This document shows positions 3,001 to 22,312 of a stretch of 64,000 bases of DNA, piece after piece (the stretch's first letter is position 1; each line of letters starts with the position of its first letter). This DNA comes from Macrostomum lignano (Eukaryota), in contig NIVC01000094.1 of the NCBI GenBank assembly GCA_002269645.1, positions 1,116,001 to 1,180,000 on the forward strand, read 5' to 3'. The position numbers and the translations under genes were made by a program. Under the pieces are notes generated by a model that was given only the letters and a program-made list of their open reading frames with translations, was not told the DNA's origin and searched no databases.

Positions 3001-3581
3001 GCAATTGAGGTTTGCCTACTGTTGAGGCTTGATCAATGAAACTAGAGAAATTCGCAACAGGGTGTCCATAGTCATCTGGTTTCTGGTGCCATCGTTTAAA
3101 GGTCCAGAAGCTCCGCCAGTAGCACAATCAGTAATTTGTCGGGGAGGATTTTAGAGGGTAAAGACCCAAGTGTGGGTGGAGATGGTGGCTCTGTATTTTG
3201 ATGAAAATTCGCTTGGTCCCTCCCCCCTTTGATTTTTTTCTAGTCTTCGCCCATTTTGGGTAAACGGCGGGAGTAAGTATGACTGTACTATAAAAGCTTA
3301 ATGCCTCGTCATCTAATTAGTGCTACGTACGTATTTTAGGCTGGGCATTTTTGCAACTTACCTTGTCTGAGCCTTTCGCCAGCCGGCCGGGTCGGCCGCG
3401 TGTTGCGCATGTATGCTTCCGACGCAGAAAAAATTGTCAGGGGAGTAGCAAACAAGTTTAAAGTGATATAATACTTATAAGTACGCTTGTAGTTTTAATT
3501 TAATGCTTTTCTTAGGCAACGAGTCACAGGAACAACTCCTCCCTCCTCCGATTTCAGTCTCAAAGTGGCCCCCAGCCCGCT

Positions 3582-4637
3582 ATGAGCAGCAGCCGACCCA
3601 AAGCGGTCTCCACGCGCAAGCGAATCCGCCGGGGCGGACCGCCCCCCTCCATCGCCGTCACGTTGCCGGTTGTGTGCTCGACTCCCGACCAGCAGCAGCC
3701 TCAGCCAGCCATCTTCACTGGCCTTGGCTTCGGCACCACCTCCGCCGCTGCCCCAACCTCGAGCTTCGTGTTCAACGGAGCCTCCGGCGCCAACAGCAGC
3801 ACCGGCGGCAGCAGCAGCGCCGCCTCCGCTCAGTCGCCAAGCAACAGCGGCAGCAACAACAACGCCGGTGCCGCTTTGCTGCGGCCGGGCGAACGACCGA
3901 CTCTGGCCGCCGCGGCAGCCGCAGCCGCCGCCTCCTACGCGGCCTCGGGCGCGTCGCCGTTCTCGTTGAACTTCAGCTCAAACAGCGGCCTCGCCGTGGC
4001 GCCGGGCATCACGAATTTCGCCGCCGGAGCCTGGAGCCCCTTCGACGCGGCGCGTGCCGCGGCCGCACTGGGTGGTCAGGCGGCGCCCAGCGGTGGCAGC
4101 GGCAGCGGCAGCGGCGGCGGCAGCGGCGGCGGAGATGCCAGAACAGCCAACGGCAGCCCTAAAAAGATTGCCAATAGAAAGTTGGCAGCTGCGCGAAGGC
4201 CCGCTGCCGCCGCCGCTGGCCCAGTGATGGGCGCGCCGCCGGCTCCGGCCGGCCCCCTGCTGAACGGTTCCCACCACCAGACTGGCCATCACCAGTCGCC
4301 CGCTCGGCTTCCCAGCTCGTCGGCATTCTCATCTGCGAATCTGCCGTTTAGACAGCCGCCTCCACCACCGCCGGCCTCGACGTCGCTGCGGCATCCTTCG
4401 ACATCATTGGCGTCCGCAGCTGCGCCCGGCTTCAGTGCCGAAGCTCCAGTCCTGCTGGCGCAGCTGGTCAAGCGCCGCTTACGCGATCTGGGCAGCGGCG
4501 GAGCTGCCGCCGAGGCTGTGTTCGCTGACGACGCCGCCGCTCCGCCCGAAGGCCGGCTGACAGCGCAGGCCGACTGGCTGGCCGAGAACGACCCCGGCGC
4601 GTTGTACAACGCGCTGGAAGAAGTCGGTCGCCAACAG
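3582..4637 (+). CDS. FAM193A: FAM193-family protein, exon 1 (Ser/Ala/Pro-rich N-terminus)
   Basis: ATG at 3582; 352 open codons ending at CAG|GTGAGA donor (phase 0), which splices in frame to 4894. ATG choice is inferred. Confidence 0.7.
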
Positions 4638-4893
4638 GTGAGAACTTTGGACGTTTTGTGTTGGGCATAAAAGCAGAAGGGTCAGGGAGCATCAGGTAAA
4701 AAAATTAGGCTATTCAGGACCCACACTTTGTGGACCTAAGTTTCAGTTGTCTATTTATTCAATCAATTGATTTAATATCGTCTAAACTAGTTTTGCTGAT
4801 GACCTATGATGTCAGCATTCTGTTGCTGCTGTTGTTGAATTCAAGGGTGACCTTCTAAAGTACACTCCATTCTCTATCCGCTCCGCTCTGCAG

Positions 4894-5139
4894 GTGCAAG
4901 AGGCCGGCTCCCGTCTGCTCAGCCAGCTGCGCGAGTCTGGCGTCTCCGGCCGCGACCAGTGCCGCGCCTTGGTCCGCTCGCTCTGCCAGGAGTTCGCCGA
5001 CCTGCGGGCGGCCGCCGCCCGTCAGGCATCCGCCGTGGCCAGACTGGAGTCCGGGCACCTGCTCAGCATGGACCTCTCCTGGCAGCTGTTGTGCGAGCAC
5101 TGGTTCCACTCGCTTGTGTACTCCTGCGACGAGTTGCAG
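4894..5139 (+). CDS. FAM193A: FAM193-family protein, exon 2
   Basis: ctctgcag| acceptor and CAG|GTAGGC donor, 82 codons. ARLESGHLLSMDLSWQLLCEHWFHSLVYS resembles the conserved LESGHL..W..H..LF..LV segment I recall from FAM193A. Confidence 0.85.
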
Positions 5140-5204
5140 GTAGGCGTCTTTGTAGTGCTGTTGCTTTGAATTGTCTCCTTTCTATGTAGCCGTAAGTACA
5201 TTTA

Positions 5205-5441
5205 TGTGACCTTCAATTTGTCTCTTTCCACTATGATGTATGTACATTAGTGTTACTTTAATTGTCAATGATGACTATCTGCATGTGCACCCGTTCGACC
5301 TTAATTGTCTCTTCATGATAAGTATCTACATGTGCACTAGTTTGACCTTAATTGTCTCCCTTATGACTATCGCTGTATGTGCACCAGTTTGACCTTAATT
5401 GTCCCCCTGATGACTATCTGTATGTGCACCAGTTTGACCTT
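5205..5441. repeat. Degenerate 45-bp minisatellite split by the Ingi-like LINE; resumes at 6812-6870
   Basis: Unit accagtttgaccttaattgtccccctgatgactatctgtatgtgc, with copies starting at 5383 and 5428 and continuing at 6812. Confidence 0.8.
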
Positions 5442-6811
5442 GTTGTTGTTGTTGTTAATTCCCGGCCGGGTTAATATCCGGGGGGCGGGTTTGCGCCCCT
5501 ACCGCCTGGAGGAAGTGCAGTGCGCGCGGGCCGTCGTCGTGGAGGATGGCCAGCGTCGGGTTCTCGCCCAGAATTTGTCGTCTGGTCTCGGTCGTGGCGC
5601 GACATTCCAGGAGCAGGTGTTTGAGGTCCTCCGGGGCCTCCCCGCAGGCCGGGCAGGTGGCCTCCGGTTCCAGCCCGATGCGGTGCCGATACTGTCGGAG
5701 TATCGGGCAGTTGCCAGAGCGTAGTTGGGCTAGCAGGACTCTGTCCTTACGGTTCATGGAGGTTTGCTGTTTGGGTCGTCGGCCGTTGATGCAGGTGCGG
5801 TGGGTGCTGCAGTGCTCGTTTGTCTCATACGATCGGATGAAGTCGTTGTGGGCCGTCGCCAGAATGGCAGAGCGTGCGCTGCGGTGATCCAGGGGTGCGT
5901 TGGTCTGATCAAGGGTGGCAGCAGCGCGGGCAGTGGCATCGGCGAGATCGTTGCGACGAAGGTCGCAGTGGCCCGGGATCCATTGCAGGGTCACGTGATG
6001 GCCAGGCGGGAGGCGTCCCAAGATGCGCAGTATGTCGCGGCAGCAAGGGGAGAGCCGCGGGCTTGGGCCGCCTTTGAGGCAGCGGAGCAGGGCCTGGGAG
6101 TCGGTCGCGCAGCGCAGCTCGCGGTTTCCCGGCCACGGCAGTGCGTCAAAAGCTGCTTGGAGGCCGAGCCTAAGCGCGCATTCTTCCGCACGGAAGGACG
6201 AGGTCAGGCTCCCCGCCGGAGCTCTCAGAAAGCGCGTCGACGAACCGCGGGTGTAGAGGACAGCTCCTGCTCCGCCGTTGGTGGTACCCCCTGCTGCCGA
6301 CCCGTCCGTCCAGAGTTCCAGGTCAGCGGGGGGGAGCGACGCTAGGGTCTCCAGCGCCGCGGCCCTGCGAACATGCGGTGGGTCGTCGCGTGAGCACTTA
6401 ACTATGAGGGCGTCTTGGATGTGAAAGCTGGTCGAGGATGACCACGGAGGCACCAGCTCGTTGTCGGTTTCGATTTGGAGCTCAGCCAGTCCGGCTCTGT
6501 GGGTCAGCTCTCTGGCACACCTGCGCCAACATCTGCGGAAGTTGCCGTTTCCGCCGTGAGCGCGGATGCGAGGAGTGACTTCTCTGTCGGCGATGTTGCG
6601 GAGCGGGGTGGCTTGGCGTTGGCGGAGCGTTTTGTCCAGGAGCGTCGCTGCCGCGGCCGCCGCACTGTGAGCCAGGGGTTGGAGTCCGGCTTCGATAAGG
6701 AGCGCGGCTGTTGGCGTAGATTTGCAGCATCCTGAGATGACACGGGCAGCCTCGTTGTGGGCAGATTCCACCAGTTGTCTGCAGGCGTCCGACGCGAAGT
6801 TTAACCAGGCA
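5442..6811 (-). mobile_element. 5'-truncated non-LTR retrotransposon, I/Ingi-like (RT C-terminus + RNase H + CCHC knuckle)
   Basis: Open frame to stop 5455-5457 with RNase H motifs WTDGS, RAEECAL, TDSQ, WIPGH...NDLAD and knuckle CPACGEAPEDLKHLLLEC. (CAA)4-5 tail follows the stop directly. 14-bp TSD accagtttgacctt at 5428-5441 and 6812-6825. Confidence 0.9.
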
Positions 6812-6885
6812 ACCAGTTTGACCTTAATTGTCCCCCCTGATGACTATCTGCATGTGCACCAATTTGACCCCTTGACTCTCTGCAG

Positions 6886-7321
6886 GCTGTGCAGCCGGTT
6901 CTGTTGGACAAGCTGCGACCAACCGAGGACGATGCATCTCTGGACGCCATGCAATCCTACCTGGAGCTTGACAACACTATGACGGAGGTCAGTAGCCGAT
7001 GGCGCGGCTCCCAGCAGCTGCTGGAGTCCTGGCAGGAGCTGCACCGGTGTCACCAGCCGAGGCAGAGACGCAGCCAGCACCTGCAGCACCAGCAGCAGCA
7101 CCAGTCACCGCAGCAGGCCCAGCCAAGCCAGCAGGACGGTCGCTTCACAGTGTGCGAGAAGTGCCATAAAACCCTGTGCGGCTGCTCGCACTGCTCTATG
7201 CACCGATTCACCTGCGGCCTGCACGCTCCGTCGATCAGCTGCTCTTCGTCCGACTCCGATAGGCAAGACGACGACGACGACGACGATGCTGTTGGCGAGG
7301 CAGACGGCGAGGACGACGACG
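6886..7321 (+). CDS. FAM193A: FAM193-family protein, exon 3, 5' part (interrupted by the RTE-like LINE)
   Basis: ctctgcag| acceptor, phase 0. Contains the Cys cluster CEKCHKTLCGCSHCSMHRFTCGL and ends at the left TSD copy. As assembled, the frame stops at TGA 7342-7344 inside the insertion. Confidence 0.85.
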
Positions 7322-9685
7322 GCAGCGGTGTCTTCGTAAATTGATGGTGTATCCTCCGTTGGTGTACGGCTAACCCGGCTCTCGACGCGCACACCTTCCC
7401 GCAGTTCTCGTAATTGCACCTGTACCCGGTCAGCTCCGATTCCACTTCTCCGGCTTCTCTTTCCTGTGCTGTTTCTTCCTCAGTCGTCTCTGCTTTCTTT
7501 CCTTTCTTCCTCTCGCTCTCCTCCAGCGCTCTTTCCCTGATGCGTAACTTCTTTCTCCAAGCCTCTCTATCGGTCACCAGCCTTTCGACCTCCAGCTCAT
7601 CGATTTCTGCCGTGCGCAGTAGCTTTCTCCATACCGAGATGATGGTCTGCCTTCTCTTCCGCGCTTTCTTGATGGTAGTCAGCTTCTTGCTCCAGCCGAG
7701 GACACATCTTTTGACGGTGCTGGTATCCGGGAGTCTGAGTACGTGGCCTAGCCTGCGCCAGTGGGCCGATTCGACTTTGGCGCCGATGCTTCGGACCCGC
7801 AGTTCGTTCCGCACGTCCCACATGTTCACTTTTTTTCTCTCCATTTCTTTTAGCGGTGGTTCGGTCTTGCTGCTCCACACGTACCGATAACGACGGTCCA
7901 TTGCCTGCTGCATCCGCTTAATTTCCGACTTGTGGAAGGGCCGGGCGCCTGCATTGAAGAGCATCGTGCTCTCAACACAGGTCTCTATGATCCTAGCTTG
8001 GGTGCGTTTGCTTAGTCGTGTTTTGCGTAGCATGCATTTGACTCCCGCCCACGCTTTGGCAGCTCTCTGCAGCCGCTGGGCGGTGTCCTGCTTTCTGCCG
8101 ATCCAGGTGCCCAGTATCCGGATGTTCTGACTCTCAGGTGTTCCTAGCTTAGCTCGCTCTTCCTTCTCATCGTTCGTCCGTTCTTCTAGGATTCCGATGG
8201 TCTCGATGACGGTTCTCGTCCCTTGCTCGATTTCCTCGGATCCCCCGACAATAGTGGTGTCGTCAGCGAACAGTACTTCTGTGATTGTTATCTCCGCCGC
8301 TTCTTCGTTGTAACCTCCCATCTTTTTAGGCGGTAAGCATTTGCCCGGTCGGCAAACCCACTTGATTCCGCATTCGGCCCCGGTGTTCTTCGCTTTTTCC
8401 ATGCGCCTCTCTTTTGCTATCCGTATCGCCGTCTGGTGATAGATGTTGAAGAGGATAGGCGATGTGGCGCAGCCTTCTCTCAGCCCGCGTTGTGGGTAAA
8501 ATTCGGAACTTGTCTCTGCGCCGCACCGTACCGTGTACGCGGTGTACTCGTGCAGGTCTGCCAGCTTTTTTATCGTGCGCTCCGGCATGTGCTGATGTTT
8601 CAGCAGTTCCCAAAGAGCCGGCTTGTTTACCCGCGGGTAGGCCTTCTTAAGGTCTAGCAAGACTAGGCTGGTATCCATCGACTCTGCCCATTCTGGGCTC
8701 TCTCTGATCTTCTCGGCGTCCTCGTTCAGTCTGAGTATGATCTGGGTCGCATCCATAGTGGACCGGCCGCTCCGGAAACCGAACTGGTTGTCGTCTAGCA
8801 GACCCATGTTCTCCGTCCATGAGCTCAGCCTCGTCGCCAGTATCCGAGCGAGTATCCTGCTTGCGACTGGTAGGAGGCAGATCCCTCTGAAATTATTGAG
8901 GTTCGTCCGATCGCCTTTCTTGTGGAGTGGCATGATTACACCTACTTTCTGGTCCTCCTCCCAGGTGTCCGCTGGGTTGTTCCAGATGTAGTGCACTACT
9001 TTCCGGACCTCCGCTTGGGCCATTGCGCACGCGCTGGTGATGTAGCGCATTCGGATGCCGTCTAAGCCCGGGGCCCCGTCTTTGATCTTTTTGATTTCGT
9101 CGTCGATCTCTTTGTTTGTTAGTGGTCTGGACAGCCGGTCATTGGCTTCCTCTATCGTAGCCTTGTCTACGCTTGGCTTTGGGGCTGACCTAATTAGATT
9201 GAGCATTTCCTCCTGGTCGTTCTCGAACCGTTGCTCCTGGATCTTTGACAGGTGATAGGTTTACGAAGACACCGCTGCCGTGCCTAAAGTGCAACGCTAC
9301 CTTCTTCACGGAGGCGACAAGAAAAAACCACCAGAAGAGGTGCGGAGGAGAGGAGCGATCGGCGAAAGAAGTCCACTGCGGAGAGTGCAACAAGTGGATA
9401 AGCAAGTCCAACCACGCGCGGCATAGGAAACGGTGCAAGGAGAACGGAAGGAAACCAGAGGCGGGCGCGACACCGGACGAGAGGGCAGAAGAAGCAGCAG
9501 TACCAACGGGGAGAGGCCAGCAGACGACGGGGATTACGGCGCGGATCTACAAGAGCGCCAGAGCTCCGTGCCCGGACTGCGGGAGGATGCTGGCCCGCAC
9601 GAACATGGCCAGACATCGAAAGACCTGCCAGTGAGTCGGCGGCAGAGCGTCCACGCCGCGAGGCGAGAAAAGGACTGAAGAAGAA
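7322..9685. mobile_element. 5'-truncated, 5'-inverted RTE-like LINE (7322-9259 on -, 9260-9685 on +)
   Basis: Minus-strand RT with NNFRGICLL, QFGFRSGRST, DLKKAYPRV, GLREGCATSP and LFADD motifs. Plus-strand 3' end with stop at 9632-9634 and tail gaagaagaa 9677-9685. 25-bp TSD gaggcagacggcgaggacgacgacg at 7297-7321 and 9686-9710. Confidence 0.92.
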
Positions 9686-9710
9686 GAGGCAGACGGCGAG
9701 GACGACGACG

Positions 9711-11363
9711 CGGGCTCAGACGATGAGGACGGGTCGGAAGACGGCTACTACTACGGATACAAGGCCGTCGGGCTGCCCGGCATCGGCTTGTCCGCCCCGC
9801 TGCCGTCCCACCCGATGACCCCGGCCGACTGCGTCCCGGCCAACTCCCGAGTGGCCTCGCCCGCGTCGCCTTCCTCGTCGGCGTCACCTCCGCCGCCGAT
9901 TCCTCCGCCGTCGCTGCCCATGCCGATGCCGCACCTGCCGCAGCCGATTCCGACCTGCGCCGCTGCCGCCGCTGCTTCTGCAAGTCAGCCGCTCGCCGCG
10001 CCAGCGTCTGCCGCTCCTTGCGGCCATCGCTGCTGCGGCGGCGACGGCGTTGGAGTTGACGACGAGGACGACGACGACGATGAAGACGACGAAGAGGATG
10101 ACGACGATGACGGGGGGTCGGGCGACTCGACTTGCCAGCGGGGCGGCGGCAACTCCAAGTACTGCGACTGCTGCTACTGCGAGGTTTTCGGCCACACCGG
10201 AGGCCAGCAGCCGCCCGTGCCGCCGAAATTCTTTGAGAAACGGGAACAGCTGCGGTTAAAACTGCAGAAGAAGAAGGAGAATGGCCAAAAGCAGCAACAG
10301 CAGCCGGATTCGCAGCCAAAAGAGCAGCAGCAGCAGTCAAAGAAGTCGAAGGTGCCAGATCGGACAGCCGACATCGACGAACTGGTGAAGTTCATTGAAG
10401 GCGACTCGTCTAAGAAGCCTTCTAGCGGAGCGGCGAATGGCTCCGTCGCTCCGGCCGCCGACAAGAAGATGACGAAACGCGAGGCCAAGAAGGCGCGCCA
10501 ACGGGCGAAAAAGGCGGAGGCAGCAGCAGCAGCAGCCGCCGCCACCGCCGCTGCTGCACGGTCGCCTTTGCCGTCTCCGCCTTCCTCGCCCCCGCCGGCT
10601 CCTTCAACGCTGTCTGTGGTGAAGCCGCCGACTCCAAAGCCGCAGCCGCCTTTGTCGTCACCGCGAGAGGCGCAGCCAAAGCAGCAGCAACAGCAGCAGG
10701 CCCAGCAGCAGCAGCCGAGGACGCAGCAGCGCGTGCTAGCAGACGCCAAGGCCTCTCAGACTCAAATCCGGACGGCGCAGTCCGCGCCTGCGAAAAGCAG
10801 CCGACCGCAACAGCAGCAGCAACAACAGCAACAGCAGAAGCAGCAACAACAACAGCAGCAGCAACAGCATAGTGCTGTTAATGGAACAAATCGAAGACCT
10901 CTTCAGCAGCAACAGCAGCAGGCGGGTAGCCGCGTGAATCACCGCCAACAGCCTCAGCGGCAGAATGGAACGGCTTCGTACGTTCAGCCAGCTGCTGCTG
11001 CGGCAGCCGCAGCCGCGCCTCCAAATGTCATTCGTTCCGCCGCTGGTGAGCGAAGAAGCCACAGGCAGCAGCAGCAGCTGCAGCAACAACAACAGCAACC
11101 TCGACAGCAGCAACAGCAGCAGCAACAGAGGCAACAACCTGTACAGCTGAAGCAGCACCGTCAGGCTGTCCAGAACCATCAGCAGCAGCAACACCAGAGA
11201 CAGCCGACGCGGCATCAGCCGGCTCAGTCGCAGCACAATCAGCACAGTCTGTTGCCGGAGCAGCAGCAGCACTATCAACAGCACTATCCGCCGCTAAGAA
11301 TTCATCAGCAACATCAGCAGAACTCTCGCGACAGAGAGTCCCGGAGTAAAATGGATGAAATTG
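9711..11363 (+). CDS. FAM193A: FAM193-family protein, exon 3, 3' part
   Basis: In frame with 6886-7321 once the insertion and one TSD are removed (g7321+cg9711-12 = Ala). Contains YCDCCYCEVFGH, REQLRLKLQKKK, IDELVKFIEG and AKKARQRAKK FAM193 motifs, then polyQ. Donor ATTG|GTGAGA (phase 1). Confidence 0.9.
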
Positions 11364-11523
11364 GTGAGAATTTTGGTGTCACTTTGCTGCTTAGAGAAGG
11401 ATTAGAGGAGTGCTGCGGGCACCCGGGCGAGCGGGCGAGAGTTTGAACGCGTTTACCCTATAGTTGCCCTGCCCCCTCTCCCTAGTCAGATTGTTAATGT
11501 TTCCCTCAATTGTACACTTTCAG

Positions 11524-11605
11524 AGGAAGTGTTTCGGCCCAGAGACGCCTCAGCCAACGGCTATCTGGATGACGATGTGGACCCGGTGGTCGAGCAGTTT
11601 AAAAG
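11524..11605 (+). CDS. FAM193A: FAM193-family protein, exon 4 (FAM193 C-terminal domain)
   Basis: tttcag| acceptor, phase 1 to phase 2. EEVFRPRD...VEQFK matches the VFLPKD...VEYFK pattern of the FAM193 C-terminal domain. Confidence 0.85.
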
Positions 11606-11639
11606 GTTTGCTTGCGGCCCTCAGCCTACTGCAATTGCG

Positions 11640-12110
11640 TCACCAACAGTGCAGAACCCCCACCCCCACCCCAGCAGTTTCGCCACCAACAATGCAGAAC
11701 CCCCACCCCCACCCCAGCAGTTTCGCCACCAACAGTGCAGAACCCCCACCCCCACCCCAGCAGTTTCGCCACCAACAGTGCAGAACCCCCACCCCCACCC
11801 CAGCAGTTTCGCCACCAACAGTGCAGAACCCCCACCCCCACCCCAGCAGTTTCGCCACCAACAGTGCAGAACCCCCACCCCCACCCCAGCAGTTTCGCCA
11901 CCAACAGTGCAGAACCCCCACCCCCACCCCAGCAGTTTCGCCACCAACAATGCAGAACCCCCACCCCCACCCCAGCAGTTTCGCCACCAACAGTGCAGAA
12001 CCGCCACCCCAGCAGTTTCGCCACCAACAGTGCAGAACCCCCACCCCCACCCCAGCAGTTTCGCCACCAACAGTGCAGAACCCCCACCCCTCCCCCCCGC
12101 AGTTTCGTGC
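11640..12110. repeat. 43-bp minisatellite filling FAM193 intron 4
   Basis: About 11 copies of gcagtttcgccaccaacagtgcagaacccccacccccacccca. Confidence 0.95.
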
Positions 12111-12187
12111 TGAACACGGAAGCGCCCAAGGAGCGGCAGAAGGTCCGGCTCGATCTGCACTCGCTATCGTTCAGCAAGCGAAAATAG
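12103..12187 (+). CDS. FAM193A: FAM193-family protein, last exon
   Basis: cccgcag| acceptor, phase-compatible. SFVLNTEAPKERQKVRLDLHSLSFSKRK* parallels the FAM193 terminal motif. Total spliced CDS without the LINE is 3558 nt = 1185 aa + stop. Confidence 0.8.
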
Positions 12188-13449
12188 CCAAACCGGCTGT
12201 TTCAGGCTCCACCAGTGTCTCAGCATAATTTTGAGCTAATTGATTGCGAATAAAATAATAGTTGCAGAGATCTCTGCCAGAAATATGATTATTACTCGTA
12301 TAATACGCTCGTAAGTGTAATTGCAGGGCATCCATGTTGGCAGAGCGCGCTTACCCAAATTTTTCAATGCCTTATTTCTATGAATTTTATTCTCAATCAA
12401 TCTTCCCCGTCGCCAGGTGTCATTCAAAATATTGAGCACTATTTACTATATTTATATATTGTTGCTTAAAATGCGTGTGTCCCAACTGTTATTTTTTACA
12501 TGTACCACATTAGTAATGATCAATTATGTGATGAAGAGCAGATTTCAGTTTTTGATTTTTTCCGCTCTATTTTAATTGGGCGATCCAATACACACACGCG
12601 CATATGCATATGAATGTCCTTGTAGCTATCGTTGGCTAGGCCAGTCTATTTATATTAGAATAAATATATTTATATTATGTAATCTTTATTCCTTCTGTTG
12701 CCTTACAGACTTGCGATATATATTATCTAATATTATTTATTATTTTATTCAATCGATAAAATCGGTCGCGCTTCTTCCCTCATCACGTTAGGCTTTCCCA
12801 GCTGCTAATTTGTGATCACGTGATCTATGTTACTCATTAATGTTGCTGTCTCTGTTTTTTTTGTTTGTTTTTTCCCCGGCTACACAGATCGGTTCTTTCT
12901 GTCAGTTCCTGCACTTCTCACGCCTCACTAGCTCCCCGTGATCTGCACTGAGCATTACTGAGCTGAAGCTTCAGTTCAATTTCATTTTTACCAATAAATT
13001 TGCCTCAATTTTGTCTTCTATTTTTTGCTCGAGTCAAGCGCCACTCGAAATAGCTGCCCCCGCCCCGCCACCAACCCCACCGATGAGCACCCTCTGAGTT
13101 GCGGTTCGAGGCGCGCGCTTTGAAATCTTTCTGCCTATTTGCTTTCTGCTCACTCATCACACTGAAAAGCCTGTAAATTGTTGTGAATTTGAGACAGAGA
13201 AATAAGAGAATGCAGAGTGATTTGATGTCGGTTTCTGTCAGACTTTAGTCTTGTATTATAAAATATAAATTATTCAATCCAGCCGAAAATAAACTCGATT
13301 TATGCGCGAAAATGGAAGTTGTACGTATCCGCCGCCGAATACTGGGCGTTTTAAATTTGTACTTTTGTATTATATTATATTATTGTGCGAACTAGGGCAA
13401 CCTTGGAAATCCTGGTCAATACAGTGCACCTATATATGCTATAGGCTTA

Positions 13450-13695
13450 GAGCAGTCACGTGACAATGTTCGCGACCTTTAGAAATATCTCAATCCCAGA
13501 GCCCTCTTGCTATTGGTTCACAGTAGTCACGTGACAATCATTTCGTCCAATAGCAAGTCTCAAACGCGGCTCTCTTGCTATTGGTTTACAATATTCACGT
13601 GACAATCATTTCATTCAATAAAAATATCTCGAACCCGGAGCCCTCTTGCTATTGGTTCAAAATAGTCACGTGATAATTTTCTCGTCCAATAGCAG
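13450..13695. promoter_or_regulatory. Four ~70-bp palindromic cassettes with CACGTG E-box and CCAAT boxes
   Basis: CACGTG at 13457, 13528, 13596 and 13667. The best copy has an 11-bp inverted repeat cttgctattgg/ccaatagcaag (13506-13557) around GTCACGTGAC. Lies ~240 bp upstream of ATG 13931. Regulatory role is inferred. Confidence 0.5.
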
Positions 13696-13930
13696 TACGC
13701 GCTGGCATGTTAATTTTTATTGGCTCAAAATAGTTACGGTACACGTTTCATTCAGACAAGATTTAATTAGTGCATGCTTTTACGAGCGTACAGTAAAAGC
13801 GGCCAATCGATTTTTAAAACACGATAATGTCTTCCTTACTCTACTATTGTCTAGTTTTAAGTAGTAGTGTACGCCAACATTGTATTTATAATAATCGGAT
13901 TTTCCTCCATACGATTGCATTGCAGCGGCC

Positions 13931-14281
13931 ATGTCCGCCCGCCCGTTCGGTGCCATTGTCAGCGCTGTATCCAGCGGACTGCTGAGCACAGCGCTCCGTC
14001 ATCCCAGTCAATTCGTCCAGCTTCCCTCTCGCCTCATCGCCGCTGCTCCAGCCCGTCAATTACAGACGTCGCAGTCGTACTCTTCTAAGCTGTCGAGCAT
14101 CGCAGTGTCCAAGAAGAATTCGCGCAAGGAGATCCAGAAGGTGCTGACCAGAATTCGCAAACGGGAACGCGAGGAGGCCCAGCAGCGACGCGAGTGGCAG
14201 CGCATGGAGGAGCAGCTGCGACAGGCTGAGCAGGCCGCGAACAAATATGATGTCGTGGAATCTGTGGATGAGAAAAAGTGA
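13931..14281 (+). CDS. Hypothetical 116-aa protein, possible mitochondrial presequence plus coiled coil
   Basis: ATG in gccATGt context; GC-rich island between AT-rich flanks. The first ~65 aa have no acidic residues and are rich in R/S/A/L; the C-terminus is charged and helical. No family recognised. Confidence 0.6.
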   Translation: MSARPFGAIVSAVSSGLLSTALRHPSQFVQLPSRLIAAAPARQLQTSQSYSSKLSSIAVSKKNSRKEIQKVLTRIRKREREEAQQRREWQRMEEQLRQAEQAANKYDVVESVDEKK

Positions 14282-14574
14282 CTTTTTAGCTGTTAGACAC
14301 AATAAGCAGATAAATTTGGTAACGTCAAAGTTTGTAAATTCTAGTGCCTACTGGCACTGTAGACCTTAGTAGTATAGTCGCATTTCTTGCTTTCTTTAGG
14401 CTGAGTTGATTATTCGCTGTACTTTGAATACTGTTTCATGTTAGATTTTCAGTATAATGCCTTCTGTAACATGGTATGAAATATATGAACTATCCTTTTC
14501 TAGGCTTTTCTGAGCCTGGTATGATGTCTTCGTGCAATTATTATTTTTTACTATTCAATCATAGACTCATTGGC

Positions 14575-14865
14575 CCGCTGCGCAGACCCACCCCACTCCA
14601 TCTGGCCTGCTGCGCACACCCACCCCACTCCATCTGGCCCGCTGCGCACACCCACCCCACTCCATCTGGCCCGCTGCGCACACCCACCCCACTCCATCTG
14701 GCCCGCTGCGCACACCCACCCCACTCCATCTGGCCCGCTGCGCACACCCACCCCACTCCATCTGGCCCGCTGCGCACACCCACCCCACTCCATCTGGCCC
14801 ACTTCGCACACCCACCCCACTCCATCTGGCCTGCTGCGCACACCCACCTCACTCCGTCTGGGCCG
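14575..14865. repeat. 32-bp minisatellite
   Basis: About 9 copies of catctggcccgctgcgcacacccaccccactc between the small ORF and HPDL. Confidence 0.95.
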
Positions 14866-14927
14866 CTGAACAAAAAACAGTTAGCGGTGCCTCGCTAAAG
14901 AAATTGCTACCAAAAGTCACTCCTCCA

Positions 14928-15385
14928 ATGTTTCCGCCGCTGGCGACTGGGGCGCCGGCCGCCTTATCGCAGCTGTCGCTGCGCGTCCACCACGTGGAGA
15001 TTCACACCAAGCGACTGGGTCGTCTGCTTGATCGCCTGTGCGCCGGCCTGAACTTCCGGCCGACCCTGGTGCACCCAGGCGGAGCGGGACACGGCGCCCT
15101 GGTCACCAAGGGCCGGGCCAGGTTCCTTCTGCGGCCTCTGCTGGGCCCCCAGACCGACAGCGTTGTTGACGTTGCTTTTGAGACGCCGCGCCTCGATCAG
15201 TTCGTTGCCGATCGGCGTCGCGCCGAAGTTGCCGTTGAGGCCGCCTGCGGCGCCGTGCCTGCGTTGCGATTTCAGTCGCCGGCTAGCGGCGGCCTGTGGC
15301 ACACCGTGCTGCAGCAGCGGCACCAGCGGCACCAGATGTCCAGGAGACAGTTTCTGGCGGCCTGCTTTCCCGACTTGGTGCCTGC
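14928..15385 (+). CDS. HPDL: HPDL-like dioxygenase, exon 1
   Basis: ATG 14928; VOC-fold N-terminal motifs HHVEIH...FLL...SVVDVAFE; donor GC|GTGAGT (phase 2). Start codon is tentative. Confidence 0.75.
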
Positions 15386-15517
15386 GTGAGTGATCGGCCT
15401 TGCTGGGGACTTTAAAAAGCTATTAAAAGAGTATAGAAGAAGGCGGGGCCGATTCTGAGGGAATGGCTGACATTGGACTGAAATTCAGCTCAGCGCATTG
15501 AATTTGCCTTACTGCAG

Positions 15518-15676
15518 GCAGCGCACGGAATCAGCTGATGCGGACCAGGAGGGGGAAGATGACGGTGGCGGTGCCTTCATCGATCACGTGGCCCTAGCCT
15601 GCCATGCCAGCGAGTCGGCCCGCATTCTAGCCTGGTATGAGAGCATCTTCCAGCTGCCCCGCTACAGGGTTAACAG
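15518..15676 (+). CDS. HPDL: HPDL-like, exon 2
   Basis: tactgcag| acceptor; IDHVALAC (first metal His) and ILAWYESIF; donor AG|GTATGC. Confidence 0.85.
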
Positions 15677-15684
15677 GTATGCGC

Positions 15685-15725
15685 CTGTCTGTCTGCCTGT
15701 CTGTCTGTCTCTGTCTGTCTGTCTG

Positions 15726-15776
<51 letters not shown>

Positions 15777-15898
15777 GTCTGTCTGTGTCTGTCTGTCTAT
15801 CTGTCTATCCGTCTTTCTGTCTGTCTGTCTGTCGGTCTGTCTGTCTGTCTGTCTGTCTATCCGTCTGTTTGTCTTTCGTCTGTCTGTCTGTCTGTCTA
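15685..15898. repeat. (TCTG)n microsatellite in HPDL intron 2
   Basis: Direct reading of the sequence. Confidence 0.95.
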
Positions 15899-15931
15899 CC
15901 CATGCACATCCGCATTACTCTGCTACTCCAG

Positions 15932-16071
15932 CACAGAAACGGAGGGTGGCTTCACCGTTCGCTACAAGGACTCCGGCATGAACTTGAAAGCCATTGCATC
16001 GAACGAGCCGCCGGACGCCAGGGACCACTACACCGGACTGAAGTTCGTGTTCGCCGAATCGCTGAACTCTG
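15932..16071 (+). CDS. HPDL: HPDL-like, exon 3
   Basis: ctccag| acceptor; G(M)NLKA...LKFVFAESL; donor G|GTCAGT (phase 1). Confidence 0.85.
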
Positions 16072-16192
16072 GTCAGTTTTTGTCGAGAATAATTTTTCCA
16101 CTTTTACATACTGGATATTTATCTAGTAAGTTCCCGATGGAATAAGTTTGAACAAGTTTGCTGGCGTGCATAATATCTATAAATGAGATTTT

Positions 16193-16312
16193 AAGGGTCA
16201 AAATGGCACAACACAGAGTCAAAATGGCACAACACAGAGTCAAAATGGCACAACTCAGAGTCAAAATGGCACAGCTCAGAATCAAAGTGACACAGATCAG
16301 GGTCAAAATGGC

Positions 16313-16345
<33 letters not shown>

Positions 16346-16820
16346 TAAACAGACAGACAAAATGGCACATCTGAGTCAAAATGGCACAGCTCAGAGTCAA
16401 AATGGCACAGCTCAGAGTCAAAATGGCATAACTCAGAGTCAAAATGGCACATCTCAGAGGCAAAATGGCACACCTCATAGTCAAAGTGACACAGATCAGG
16501 GTCAAAATGGCACAGCTCAAAGTCAAAATGGCACACCAGTGTCAAAGTGCCACAGATCAGGGTCAAAATGGCACACCAGAGTCAAAGTGACACAGATCAG
16601 GGTCAAAATGGCACACCAGAGTCAAAGTGCCACAGATCAGGGTCAAAATGGCACAACTCAGAGTCAAAATGGCACATCTCAGAGGCAAAATGGCACACCT
16701 CATAGTCAAAGTGACACAGATCAGGGTCAAAATGGCACAGCTCAAAGTCAAAATGGCACACCAGAGTCAAAGTGACACAGATCAGGGTCAAAATGGCACA
16801 GCTCAAAGTCAAAATGGCAC
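16193..16820. repeat. 21-bp minisatellite with embedded (ACAG)n in HPDL intron 3
   Basis: Unit gtcaaaatggcacagctcaga with gtcaaagtgacacagatcagg variants; (ACAG)n at 16313-16359. Confidence 0.9.
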
Positions 16821-16853
16821 CGCTTAGAATGAAAATGACACTGTCCCTCACAG

Positions 16854-17007
16854 GCCCCAACCAGATCAACACATTCCTGCGCGAGCACGGAGGCTCGGGT
16901 GTGCAGCACGTGGCCATTCATTTGGACAATTTTGTGCAGCAGGTGGCGGCCTACAGGCAACGCGGCGTGGAGTTCATGGACCCCCGGCTGCCTACTACAG
17001 CAAAGAG
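16854..17007 (+). CDS. HPDL: HPDL-like, exon 4 (1 nt short in C-run 16981-16985)
   Basis: NQINTFLREHGGSGVQHVAI (second metal His). One extra C is needed to read DPPAAYYSKE and reach the phase-0 donor GAG|GTATGC. Confidence 0.85.
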
Positions 17008-17192
17008 GTATGCTGGGTAGAAGACCATGCAGAAAAAATCGATAAATTAAAATTAAAATTGATAATTTATTAACTCGACTACTCTACTCGTAGTAGAAAA
17101 ATATGGAAAATACCTTTAATTTTCGCTTTGCTAACGATAGCGATATCAGTAAAAATTGAATACGAGCGTGCTGGATGTTCCCAACACTGCAG

Positions 17193-17320
17193 ATCGGCAA
17201 GGTGCAGCAGATTGCCGAATCCGGGCTCGATCTGCAGTCGGTGCGAGATAATCAAATTCTGGTGGACTGCGAGGCCGACGGAGGTGGCGGCGACGACTGC
17301 CCTGCTGACAGCAGAGACAG
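17193..17320 (+). CDS. HPDL: HPDL-like, exon 5
   Basis: cactgcag| acceptor; IGKVQQIAESGLDLQSVRDNQILVD; donor AG|GTGAGG (phase 2). Confidence 0.85.
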
Positions 17321-17387
17321 GTGAGGTGCACCTTATAGCCGGTGAGATACTACTAGGAGAGGTATTTGTTGTAGAATAGGGATTATC

Positions 17388-17790
17388 TTCTGTAGGGTAG
17401 GGAGGGATTATCTGCTGTAGGGTAGGGAGGGATTATCTGCTGTAGGGTAGGGAGGGATTATCTGCTGTAGGGTAGGGAGGGATTATCTGCTGTAGGGTAG
17501 GGAGGGATTAACTGCTGTAGGATAGGGAGGGATTAACTGCTGTAGAGTAGGGAGGGATTATCTGCTGTAGGGTAGGGAGGGATTATCTGCTGTAGGGTAG
17601 GGAGGGATTATCTGCTGTAGGGTAGGGAGGGATTATCTGCTGTAGGGTAGGGAGGGATTATCTGCTGTAGGGTAGGGAGGGATTATCTGCTGTAGGGTAG
17701 GGAGGGATTATCTGCTGTAGAGTAGGGATTATCTGCTGTAGAGTAGGGATTATCTGCTGTAGAGTAGGGATTATCTGCTGTAGAGCAGGG
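17388..17790. repeat. 25-bp minisatellite in HPDL intron 5
   Basis: Unit gggattatctgctgtagggtaggga, period confirmed at 17404/17429/17454. Confidence 0.95.
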
Positions 17791-17839
17791 ATGTGTTACC
17801 ATAGCAAAGGTAACTCCGCTAATTCCACTGCGGCCGTAG

Positions 17840-17996
17840 GTACCTGATGCAGGTGTTCACGAAGCCGCTGCTCAGCGAGGACACTTTCTTCCTGGAGCTC
17901 ATCAGCCGAGTTGGCGCTCGCGGTTTCGGCGCTGGCAACATATCGGCGCTGTGGCGCGCGGTGGAAGCCCACATGCTCAGCAGGGGGCAGCTGTGA
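17840..17996 (+). CDS. HPDL: HPDL-like, last exon
   Basis: [42 protein letters not shown] is the HPDL-type C-terminal motif with the metal Glu; TGA at 17994-17996. Corrected protein is 398 aa. Confidence 0.92.
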
Positions 17997-18554
17997 TTGC
18001 TGGAACTTGTGGGAGGAGAAGGGAACGGAGGAAGAACTCTGCTTCTAGGAGAAGATTTAATTGAATATTCTTTTGTGCTTCAGTTAATCTGACACTGTTC
18101 GCGCACAGGCTGATCCGCAGGGCATTTCCTAGCATGTTTTGCAACTAGCTGAATTTTTATTTTTCTTTGCCATAATTAACATTTTTAACAACCAAAAAGT
18201 GCTACTGATTCACTGGCTTTGTTTTTTCTCAAGTAGTATGTACCGCGTGCTCGCAAGCTGGTACAATCTCAGCGCATACACACACGGCTAGCCTTTACCT
18301 GATTATTCAGAGTTTCTGCCTTCTCTGTCCCCGCGTGTCTGCCTATGTTTAACCCATGTTTAAGCTTAATAATCAGCGGCTGCATCTCCGGTCTCGGGCG
18401 CCCGTCTGGCCCGCTGCATTCAGAATGGAATTCGAGCCTTCTGCTTTTGATACGAAACTCTGCATTCTGCTTTGGGACTGACGCGCTTTGTGCTTCTTTT
18501 GGGGGGGCTTCAAGATTCAACACACGTTATTATCGATATTTGTAGTCGGTTAAG

Positions 18555-20320
18555 ATCCTCAGTTGCTGGGCCAGCCTCCCAGATCCTCAGTGTCTGAGCC
18601 AGCCTCCCAGATCCTCAGTTGCTGGGCCAGCCTTCCAGATCCTCAGTGTCTGGGCCAGCCTCCCAGATCCTCAGTTGCTGGGCCAGCCTCCCAGATCCTC
18701 AGTGTCTGAGCCAGCCTCCCAGATCCTCAGTTACTGGGCCAGCCTCCCAGATCCTCAGTTGCTGGCCAGCCTCCCAGATCCTCAGTGTCTGGCCAGCCTC
18801 CCAGATCCTCAGTTGCTGGGCCAGCCTCCCAGATCCTCAGTGTCTGAGCCAGCCTCCCAGATCCTCAGTTACTGGGCCAGCCTCCCAGATCCTCAGTTGC
18901 TGGCCAGCCTCCCAGATCCTCAGTTGCTGTGCCGCCCTTTTAGATCCTCAGTTGCTGGGCCAGCCTCCCAGATCCTCAGTCGCTGGGCCAGCCTCCCAGA
19001 TCCTCAGTTGCTGTGCCGCCCTTTCAGATCCTCAGTTGCTGGGCCAGCCTCCCAGATCCTCAGTTGCTGGGCCAGCCTCCCAGATCCTCAGTCGCTGGGC
19101 CAGCCTCCCAGATCCTCAGTTGCTGGCCGCCTTTCAGATCCTCAGTTGCTGGCCAGCCTCAGATCCTCAGTTGCTGGGCCAGCCTCCCAGATCCTCAGTG
19201 CTGGGCCAGCCTCCCAGATCCTCAGTTGCTGGCCGCCCTTTCAGATCCTCAGTTGCTGGGCCAGCCTCCCAGATCCTCAGTGTCTGGGCCAGCCTCCCAG
19301 ATCCTCAGTTGCTGAGCCAGCCTCCCAGATCCTCAGTGTCTGGCCGCCTCCCAGATCCTCAGTGTCTGGCCAGCCTCCCAGATCCTCAGTGTCTGGGCCA
19401 GCCTCCCAGATCCTCAGTGTCTGAGCCAGCCTCCCAGATCCTCAGTGTCTGGGCCAGCGGCCTCCCAGATCCTCAGTGTCTGGGCCAGCGGCCTCCCAGA
19501 TCCTCAGTGTCTGGGCCAGCGGCCTCCCAGATCCTCAGTGTCTGAGCCAGCCTCCCAGATCCTCAGTGTCTGGGCCAGCCTCCCAGATCCTCAGTGTCTA
19601 GGCCAGCGGCCTCCCAGATCCTCAGTGTCTGAGTGCCGCCCAGATCCTCAGTGTCTGGGTCAGCCTCAGCCTCCCAGATCCTCAGTGTCTGGGCCAGCCT
19701 CCCAGATCCTCAGTGTCTGGGCCAGCCTCCCAGATCCTCAGTGTCTGAGTCAGCCTCCCAGATCCTCAGTGTCTGGGTCAGCCTCAGCCTCCCAGATCCT
19801 CAGTGTCTGAGCCAGCCTCCCAGATCCTCAGTGTCTGAGCCAGCCTCCCAGATCCTCAGTGTCTGGGCCGGCCTCCCAGATCCTCATGTGCTGTGCCGCC
19901 CTTTCAGATGCTCAGTTGCTGGGCCAGCCTCCCAGATCCTCAGTGTCTGGGCCAGCCTCCCAGATCCTCAGTTGCTGGGCCAGCCTCCCAGATCCTCAGT
20001 GTCTGGGCCAGCCTCCCAGATCCTCAGTGTCTGAGCCAGCCTCCCAGATCCTCAGTGTCTGGGCCAGCCTCCCAGATCCTCAGTGTCTGGGCCAGCGGCC
20101 TCCCAGATCCTCAGTGTCTGAGCCAGCCTCCCAGATCCTCAGTGTCTGGCCGCCTCCCAGATCCTCAGTGTCTGAGCCAGCCTCCCAGATCCTCAGTGTC
20201 TGGGCCGGCCTCCCAGATCCTCAGTGTCTGAGCCAGCCTCCCAGATCCTCAGTGTCTGGGCCGGCCTCCCAGATCCTCAGTGTCTGGGCCAGCGGCCTCC
20301 CAGATCCTCAGTTGCTGGCC
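18555..20320. repeat. ~28-bp minisatellite between the convergent HPDL and GPCR genes
   Basis: Core agatcctcagtgtctgggccagcctccc, ~60 variant copies. Confidence 0.95.
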
Positions 20321-20883: not shown

Positions 20884-21496
20884 CTGGGCGGGGATGGTTG
20901 AATCAATTAAATGAGTTGACAATAGGATTTTGCAATTGAAAATAATCAGATATTCTCAGAAGGGCTGTGGGGCACCATGGCGTACTCGTACTTTCTAATC
21001 ATAGTATTAATTATTATTTATTTATATTTAGATACTGAAAAAAAGAGCGGCACACACTGCCAATGGAGCTTGTAGTCTGGCGGCCGTAGACAGCAGAGGG
21101 GGGCGCGTTGACGCTCTCTCCACTATTCAGTAGTTAGGACAGTAGCATAATTTGCATGTGCAAAGATAAATTCTCACCAGAGCGAAAATCCCAAGTAGAG
21201 GAAAAGAAATTAATGCGAATACGCGAGTTTGTACTGTAAATGCCTGTTGGTAAAGCTGGACTTTCGTAAGACTAAACTCTATAATTATTACTATCATATT
21301 AAGGATCCGGACTCATTAAAAAAACGATTCAATAAATTGTAAAATTTAATCAATTATTTCGTCAATTGTGTACTACTTACACATCTGGTCCTAACAGTAG
21401 CGCACAAGTAAATTTGGGAAGTGACCAATCTAGCTATTGCCTGTGGTCTATGCGGTAGTTTAAAGCACACTTAAGTAGTCCGTGTATCCGACTCAC

Positions 21497-22312
21497 CCGA
21501 CATTTACGCCGCCGCAGTACCAGCGCCACTTTGACCGACATGACCAGATTAACAATCAGCGTTGCTATGGCGACTAGCAAAGACGCGTCGCCGATCAGCA
21601 GCAGGCGGAACAGCATGCTGACGTAGTAGGAGGCGCTGGGCGGCTCGAACAGCACGCCGCAAAGAATCCGGGTGGCGTTGCGTGGCCCGCCAGCCGGCCA
21701 GAACGTCACCTGTGTCCGGCCGAACATGGCCAGGCTGCTTAGCGACAGCACCATGGACACGCCGGTAGCGGCGGACACCGCGGCCACCGCCCGGTTGCGA
21801 CCGACGCCGCGCATCCGCAGCGGCGCCAGCACCGACAGGCAGCGGTCCAGCGCGTAGGCCAACAGCACCAGCGCCGTCGAGCCCGACAGGAATGACTGGG
21901 CGAACCGGGTGGCCCGGCAGCCGACGTCGCCGCCAGCGTTCAGCAGAAGGAATCCGTGCCGGCCGCCGGTGGCCCAGGGGAGGCCCTTGGCCAGGTGGAA
22001 CCAGCCGAGGCCCCACACCAGCGAGTGCAGCGAGTCCCAGACGCACAGGGTAGCCAGGTAGACTGAGAATCGCGTGGACAGGCGCATCCGGGCGGCGAAC
22101 ACGTGGAGCAGCAGGCCGTTGTTGACCAGGGTGAGGGTCAGCATCACCGGTAGCGCGTAGGCGGACATCACGCCCAGGATTGTGGCCGCGGTGCACCTGG
22201 CGGCGCCGGCCTCCGGTCGGCACTCGTCCAGTAGGTCGTGCAAGGAGTCCACGTAGTCGTAGTCGTCCGGCAAGCTGTTTGCTACTGCTGAGGGTGCTCC
22301 CGCGTTTTGCAT
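21497..22312 (-). CDS. Orphan rhodopsin-class GPCR, exon 1 (TM1-TM5)
   Basis: ATG 22312; TM1 LVNNGLLL, TM2 YLATLCVWD, TM3 C...ALDRCLSV (DRY-like). The KGLPWATGG loop resembles flatworm orphan Rho-L/PROF-type receptors (from recall). Donor CGG|GTGAGT (phase 0). Confidence 0.88.

Follow-up and report, generated by a model that had tools for sequence, protein, structure and literature searches.

A 5′-inverted LINE insertion in a coding exon of one of two FAM193 gene copies of the flatworm Macrostomum lignano

A 64-kb stretch of the genome of the flatworm Macrostomum lignano (contig NIVC01000094.1 of assembly GCA_002269645.1, Mlig_3_7; hereafter the window) contains a FAM193-like gene whose third exon is interrupted by sequence of retrotransposon type, which raises the question of whether the flanks belong to one gene, how the intervening DNA came to lie there, and whether the genome holds an uninterrupted counterpart. 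The insert is a long interspersed nuclear element (LINE) in two pieces of opposite orientation, bounded by an exact 25-nt target-site duplication (TSD), and a copy of the gene with an empty site and an intact open reading frame (ORF) is present on a second contig, NIVC01004544.1. Taken together, the evidence makes it highly probable that the LINE entered exon 3 of one FAM193 copy by target-primed reverse transcription (TPRT) with twin priming and that its presence is tolerated through the intact copy. Two loci were compared: L001, taken from NIVC01000094.1 (1.29 Mb) and 100% identical to the window over 23,985 nt, which puts the window on that contig from about position 1,116,001 onward, and L002, taken from NIVC01004544.1 (42 kb).

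The boundaries of the insertion can be placed to the nucleotide. The 25-mer GAGGCAGACGGCGAGGACGACGACG occurs exactly twice in the 64 kb, at 7297-7321 and 9686-9710, with 25 of 25 positions identical, and the chance expectation for a second copy was 0 in shuffled sequences even with two mismatches allowed, bearing out the exact TSD claimed in an initial reading of the DNA alone (the original prediction). That reading had given the insert as 7322-9710, an equivalent span, but one that includes a TSD copy; the insert proper occupies 7322-9685 (2,364 nt). The filled site reads GGACGACGACG up to and GCAGCGGTGTC beyond the left junction (7321/7322), and CTGAAGAAGAA up to and GAGGCAGACGG beyond the right junction (9685/9686), and the empty site joins GACGACGACG to CGGGCTCAG. 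Deleting 7322-9710 yields a 2,089-nt exon with zero stops in frame 0 and a gene model with a 1,185-aa ORF, exactly as had been predicted. When the insert is retained, the frame continues as ...GEDDD-GSGVFVN and ends with GEDDDGSGVFVN at a TGA codon (7342-7344, plus strand) seven codons into the insert, so that the product has 586 aa, 579 native and 7 foreign, and translation thus confirmed the claimed stop at about 586 aa.

The host gene was modeled on the plus strand from its splice sites, all of which are GT-AG. Exon 1 (3582-4637) begins with an ATG at 3582, comprises 352 codons that run open to a GT donor, and is identical to the corresponding part of the database protein BOX15_Mlig012213g4; exon 2 (4894-5139) has 82 codons and AG/GT boundaries. 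Exon 3 starts at 6886 after the acceptor ctctgcag, its first base being G, and provides 145 codons plus 1 nt before the insert (6886-7321); its remainder (9711-11363) is stop-free and in frame once the insert is removed, and holds the motif KYCDCCYCEVFGH (about 10160-10200) together with long Q/A/P-rich low-complexity stretches. The FAM193_C domain begins in exon 4 (11524-11605), which is bounded by splice sites, and ends in exon 5 (12103-12187), which closes with the stop codon TAG at 12185-12187. The acceptors of the gene are ctctgcag, actttcag, and ccccgcag, and its donors are of the gtgaga or gtaggc type.

Sequence comparison confirmed this predicted five-exon gene as a FAM193 homolog. At the N terminus, BOX15_Mlig012213g4, which corresponds to window exons 1 and 2, carries a precomputed Pfam match to FAM193A_N (PF27002). 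At the extreme C terminus, the last 68 aa scanned alone scored 28.5 bits (cut-off 27; E = 1.3e-6) for FAM193_C (PF15914), covering profile positions 2-54 of 58 and spanning the exon 4/5 junction; within the full low-complexity protein the score was 20.8 bits, under the Pfam threshold. Pfam scans of exon 3 alone or exon 1 alone returned nothing at E ≤ 0.01, and FAM193_C reached significance only after exons 4 and 5 were added to the query. Between the two domains lies the Cys-rich central motif CDCCYCE(V/M)FGH. A 107-aa segment around KYCDCCYCEVFGH, 3′ of the insert, matched 105 representative proteins at E ≤ 1e-3, and FAM193_C terminates all seven of the long matches tested from this search. 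The joined 1,185-aa protein returned no matches when used unmasked as a query, its candidate list being saturated by low-complexity words; BOX15_Mlig012213g4, recorded as a partial hypothetical protein of M. lignano and encoded on both NIVC01000094.1 and NIVC01004544.1, was found with a masked 310-aa query from the exon 2-3 region.

The same homologs tie the two flanks together. Residues 325-485 gave high-scoring segment pairs (HSPs; E = 1e-10 to 1e-16) to N-terminal parts of 10 proteins. Of these, 9 additionally align to the FAM193_C region of the window protein and 7 carry a Pfam FAM193_C match, and in all 10 FAM193 homologs this HSP runs unbroken over the exon 1/2 and exon 2/3 junctions. 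Nine of them align to the joined protein in three collinear HSPs (aa ~325-485, ~722-754, and 1130-1185), and the tenth (P0162) in the first two, with no C-terminal HSP. The insertion point falls between aa 579 and 580, downstream of the first HSP and upstream of the other two; because homologs align collinearly on either side of it, the flanks are parts of one gene. The alternative that 6886-7321 and 9711-11363 are two separate genes was rejected, since L002 has them as a single exon and the homologs keep their collinearity through the insertion point. The FAM193 identity and the one-exon origin of the flanks, both proposed at the outset, thus stand on FAM193_C, the CDCCYC motif, and the collinear HSPs.

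The exact empty site that had been anticipated was found once, in NIVC01004544.1 of the same assembly. L002 reads ...GCTGTTGGC GAGGCAGACGGCGAGGACGACGACG CGGGCTCAG..., with a single 25-mer (13874-13898) and no insert, so that 6886-7321 is joined directly to 9711 onward; window position 7321 corresponds to L002 13898 and window position 9686 to L002 13874, and the aligned blocks overlap by exactly the 25-mer. The window exons map to L002 with the same splice sites and encode an intact ORF of 1,186 aa, which carries 4 substitutions relative to the joined window ORF as well as 2 in-frame indels that fall in D- and A-runs; a duplicate through which the insertion could be tolerated, as the original prediction had supposed, therefore exists in the same assembly. 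Database gene calls place a 753-aa product over exons 3-5 of L002 and have none for the corresponding part of the window copy. Along the collinear chain the two loci differ at 187 of 16,107 aligned nt (1.16%), plus large indels, and the blocks present in one copy only are the 2.4-kb exonic LINE and a 3.8-kb AT-rich block confined to L001. The latter lies upstream of FAM193 (L001 3651-7449; window -2792 to 1006), has about 28% GC at the window start, and contains no ORF of at least 120 aa. Exons 1 and 2 with 20-nt flanks (window 3582-5139; L002 10025-11582) are 100% identical between the copies, whereas exon 3 differs by about 1% and the locus by 1.16% overall; the identity of exons 1 and 2 may reflect chance, stronger constraint, or gene conversion.

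The original prediction recognized the insert as a retrotransposon, and the reverse transcriptase (RT) is confirmed, but its division into two pieces of opposite orientation had gone unnoticed. The inverted 5′ segment (7322-9259, minus strand; 1,938 nt) contains a 646-codon frame that is stop-free, as claimed, with an RVT_1 match (E = 5e-22) and the first zf-C2H2 finger, and covers the full-length protein from around residue 540 as far as that first C-terminal zinc finger. The noninverted 3′ segment (9260-9685, plus strand; 426 nt) carries an ORF (9245-9634) with a 124-codon Cys/His-finger tail that stops at TGA 9632-9634, after which come 51 nt of 3′ untranslated region. The element terminates in (GAA)3 at 9677-9685, directly abutting the TSD and without poly(A), a candidate for the canonical tail seen in this one copy. 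A 22-nt inverted repeat with 100% complementarity has its arms at the left end of the insert and at the internal junction, the left arm (7319-7340) consisting of the target bases ACG (7319-7321) and 19 nt of element (7322-7340), and the right arm (9260-9281) of 19 nt of element (9260-9278) and CGT (9279-9281), which is complementary to the target 3′ end; both arms encode the peptide FTKTPLP.

The native order of the two pieces was evaluated by joining them as protein, the query being the fragment present here and not the full element. This RT plus zinc-finger query matched 370 homologs at 39-46% identity and 99-100% query coverage, and the alignments of P0002 and P0013 run unbroken over the reconstructed junction (...HQRRIHHQF-TKTPLPCLKCNATF...). 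Full-length relatives have 1,250-1,330 aa, with Exo_endo_phos and Exo_endo_phos_2 followed by RVT_1 and then zf-C2H2, and stem from 4.0-4.6 kb contigs with a single ~1,300-aa ORF and several C2H2-type fingers. The inverted segment aligns with residues 542-1177 of P0013 (1,288 aa) at 44% identity, so that the window LINE starts at residue 542 of that protein and ~540 residues, about 42% of the ORF, are gone. No apurinic/apyrimidinic (AP) type endonuclease is found in the window copy, whereas P0013 has Exo_endo_phos/Exo_endo_phos_2 at residues 104-337; the absence is explained by 5′ truncation of this copy and is not a trait of the family. The RT is classed by sequence as of the type without long terminal repeats (non-LTR), and the PDB structures closest to it are human LINE-1 ORF2p (4e-9) and R2 RT (4e-7); the features of the L1 clade, namely poly(A), ORF1 plus ORF2, and a C-terminal CCHC motif, are lacking. 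The LINE frames total 764 codons with zero stops or frameshifts, and the TSD copies are identical. A stop-free RT frame in a truncated, inverted copy without endonuclease speaks for youth and not for activity, and the insert is predicted to have been incapable of transposing on its own from the moment of insertion. Searches with blastn and tblastn detected no further copies of the LINE in the window and L002.

These features are those of twin priming: the 3′ segment is in sense orientation and the 5′ one is inverted, both together keep the order of the native element, and the junction shows a 19-nt overlap (7322-7340 and 9260-9278) and ACG/CGT microhomology (7319-7321 and 9279-9281). The priming steps can be reconstructed from the junctions as follows. 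The bottom strand would have been nicked at 7296/7297, and its 3′ end would have primed cDNA synthesis on the (GAA)n 3′ end of the LINE RNA; the 3′ end of the LINE adjoins the right TSD, so first-strand synthesis would have begun there. This first cDNA would have reached only 426 nt. The top strand would have been cut 25 nt further on, leaving a 3′ end, ...GACGACG, able to anneal by 3 nt (ACG:CGU) inside the LINE RNA. At its left end the insert corresponds to the reverse complement of element sequence that begins exactly where CGT follows in the element, and the upstream target ends in the three bases ACG. The annealed top strand could then have primed a second cDNA of 1,938 nt toward the 5′ end of the RNA, and joining of the two cDNAs would produce the 5′-inverted, 5′-truncated insert with its 19-nt overlap and 25-nt TSD. 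Twin-primed insertions of human LINE-1 with 5′ inversion and 5′ truncation were reportedly described by Ostertag and Kazazian in 2001. Surveys of such insertions are available (PMC12016303, PMC2837659), and for human L1 inversions, in which such overlap of the cDNAs is typical, its length has a median of 12 bp with quartiles of 4-17 (PMC12016303).

For the disrupted copy, the predicted consequence is a product of only 586 aa that keeps the FAM193 N-terminal domain and lacks the CDCCYC region and FAM193_C. With two exon junctions situated about 4 kb downstream of the stop, nonsense-mediated decay is expected, and the mRNA is probably degraded; we infer the status of knockout from the premature stop. 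The loss would be tolerated through the persistence of at least one intact copy, which most likely is a homeolog from the recent whole-genome duplication. No phenotype is expected, given an intact duplicate in the same genome.

Several points weigh against this account of the locus. A microhomology of 3 nt is short and could be coincidence, and twin priming is documented for mammalian L1, with no case found in the literature for a LINE of this type. No LINE relative of more than 50% identity was retrieved that could serve as a reference for the parent element, its genuine 3′ terminus, or the time of insertion. Two FAM193 copies were seen where three are expected from the literature for most of the genome, and nonsense-mediated decay, protein truncation, and copy number are predictions from sequence. 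Finally, an enumeration near the insert boundaries gave 113 in-frame, stop-free GT/GC-AG pairs that bracket the insert, for example GCG/gtgtct after 7327 with gggctcag/ACG before 9720. If cryptic splicing removed the insert as an intron, the copy would make a near-normal protein and would not be a knockout; the pair 7327^9720, for one, changes only ...DDDAGSDDE... to ...DDDGSDDE.... A spliced bypass nevertheless appears unlikely because all the cryptic acceptors are poor: they lie in purine/GC-rich sequence without a polypyrimidine tract, unlike the real acceptors of the gene, and the candidate donors deviate from its gtgaga/gtaggc type. The annotation also has a 753-aa product for exons 3-5 of the intact copy and none for the window copy, and we regard functional intronization as very improbable. 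Still more remote is the idea that a chimeric long read or a mis-join placed the LINE in the exon. Mlig_3_7, a draft built from PacBio data of a repeat-rich polyploid, is acknowledged to contain errors, but a mis-join yields neither an exact 25-nt TSD, nor an abutting element 3′ end, nor a twin-priming junction with overlap and microhomology, and an assembly artefact was rejected on the TSD and junction signatures.

A different question is whether the filled and the empty site represent allelic states of one locus, that is, a heterozygous polymorphic insertion with NIVC01004544.1 as an uncollapsed haplotype. The empty-site contig is short (42 kb) and collinear throughout its available length, exons 1-2 are identical in both copies, and the large-chromosome versions L1 and L2 are described in PMC10733133 as acting like permanently heterozygous alleles. 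Against this, the 1.16% divergence with kilobase-scale indels equals the published between-subgenome value, and the DV1 line is highly inbred, with modeled heterozygosity inside each subgenome negligible (PMC10733133). The same paper also reports that Mlig_3_7 mostly contains three paralogous copies, from subgenomes S, L1, and L2, with subgenome single-nucleotide polymorphism rates of 2.2% genome-wide and 1.1% in coding sequence and a divergence dominated by indels; the assembly has 180 Mb of duplicated blocks at ≥95% identity (PMC5730564). The species suggested in the original prediction, M. lignano, was the right one. Ordinary allelism is therefore rather unlikely, although for L1 versus L2 the distinction between allele and homeolog is largely semantic. 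Because 1.16% plus large indels matches subgenome divergence and DV1 is inbred with negligible heterozygosity, the empty-site copy is best taken for a homeolog, or for the large chromosome in its other version, with an ordinary allele the less likely reading. The original prediction spoke of an allele; the insertion is indeed present in one copy and empty in the other, but homeolog or subgenome copy is probably the better term. The supplement of PMC10733133 holds no scaffold-to-subgenome table. In exact-sequence look-ups, three window ORFs (the 718-aa RT-antisense read-through ORF, the 151-aa truncated exon ORF, and the neighboring 116-aa ORF) were not on record, and these look-ups turned up no independent assembly, transcript, or third FAM193 copy.

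The order of events can be read from a second, older non-LTR fragment in intron 2 (5455-6771, minus strand; RNase_H 4e-9, RVT_3, zf-RVT), which has a 438-aa stop-free frame, is unrelated to the exonic LINE, and lies within a 99.3%-identical block common to both copies. Both copies carry this fragment, so it predates their split, and only one copy has the exonic LINE, which therefore postdates it. The insertion had been called a recent event, and it does postdate the split of the two copies, but its recency is only relative; the intact frames and identical TSDs are consistent with an age well below that represented by the 1.2% divergence of the copies. The intron 2 fragment sits in a 47-nt tandem repeat (5269-5441), the motif of which recurs at about 6812-6870.

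The existing annotation of the locus departs from the gene model given above. In the window, BOX15_Mlig012213g4 (3558-13985; L001 10001-20428) is a truncated, chimeric gene model in which FAM193 exons 1-2 are spliced straight to an exon at about 13926-13985 and exons 3-5 are skipped; a small ORF lying downstream (13931-14281) has its ATG overlapped by that exon in a different frame. The intact copy has the same model, with exons 3-5 called separately as a nested 753-aa gene. The model seems to be an artefact that polycistronic or trans-spliced transcripts produced in the annotation. Intron 4 is filled almost entirely by a tandem repeat (11641-12107; 43 nt × 11, 95% matches, Tandem Repeats Finder score 848), an array of unequal length in the two gene copies. 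Further arrays occupy 14571-20312: 32 nt × 9 (14571-14868), (CTGT)55 (15685-15897), 21/42/63 nt (16197-16841), 25 nt × 17 (17378-17791), and 28 nt × 62 (18553-20312). They lie in and around a neighboring glyoxalase-fold gene (L001 21386-24290), which has faint PF00903/PF13669 matches and an annotated product of 343 aa in one copy versus 390 aa in the other. A 292-aa ORF at 21434-22312 (minus strand) has hydrophobic segments and the look of a predicted multi-pass membrane protein or receptor.

A LINE that probably disables one duplicate makes for a solid but unremarkable finding in a genome that consists mostly of repeats and was recently duplicated. Insertion of LINEs into exons, 5′ inversion, and the redundancy that follows genome duplication are already well known, and no concept is changed; the one mildly unusual aspect is a textbook signature of twin priming in a flatworm LINE that is neither L1 nor poly(A)-tailed. 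The locus offers a sequence-resolved example of transposable element-driven divergence of very young gene duplicates and of 5′ inversion of the twin-priming type outside mammalian L1. For users of M. lignano, the practical point is that the FAM193 gene on NIVC01000094.1 is the disrupted copy and that designs for RNA interference or knock-out should cover the intact copy too. A bolder combination, on balance somewhat doubtful, is that the LINE family is active or was very recently active in the laboratory lineage, that twin priming operates in a flatworm non-L1 LINE, and that the locus is a dated snapshot, at a single gene, of subgenome-specific duplicate loss caused by a transposable element at the onset of rediploidization. 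Were this so, the family concerned would be one with an AP endonuclease, RT, a C-terminal C2H2 array, and a (GAA)n tail, and twin priming would extend from mammalian L1 to a non-L1, non-poly(A) LINE of flatworms.

Each component of the locus has a better-known counterpart. Human FAM193A and FAM193B resemble the flatworm protein in FAM193A_N, the central CDCCYCE motif, the C-terminal FAM193_C, the order of these elements, and similar overall length, whereas identity within the domains is only about 28-35%, the flatworm protein has very long Q/A/P low-complexity linkers, and its FAM193_C is barely over the Pfam threshold alone and below it in the full protein. Exonic LINE insertions act as loss-of-function alleles elsewhere, for example L1 in exon 14 of human F8, which likewise is a retrotransposon in a large coding exon with a premature stop a few codons in; unlike that case, the flatworm genome holds an intact duplicate. 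The two FAM193 copies follow the subgenome pattern given in PMC10733133, with ~98-99% identity at small scale and mainly large indels differing, but that paper provides genome-wide statistics and, as far as it was read, does not describe the FAM193 disruption. The insertion itself is most like twin-primed human LINE-1 in its sense 3′ and inverted 5′ segments, its one TSD around the whole insert, its short cDNA overlap (19 nt, compared with a median of 12 bp), its target microhomology at the internal priming site, and the immobility of the copy from insertion. It differs in that the element is only distantly akin to ORF2p (E = 4e-9) and its relatives apparently have a single ~1,300-aa ORF, in its C-terminal C2H2-like finger array and (GAA)3 end instead of poly(A), in a 25-nt TSD at the long end of the L1 range, and in its flatworm host.

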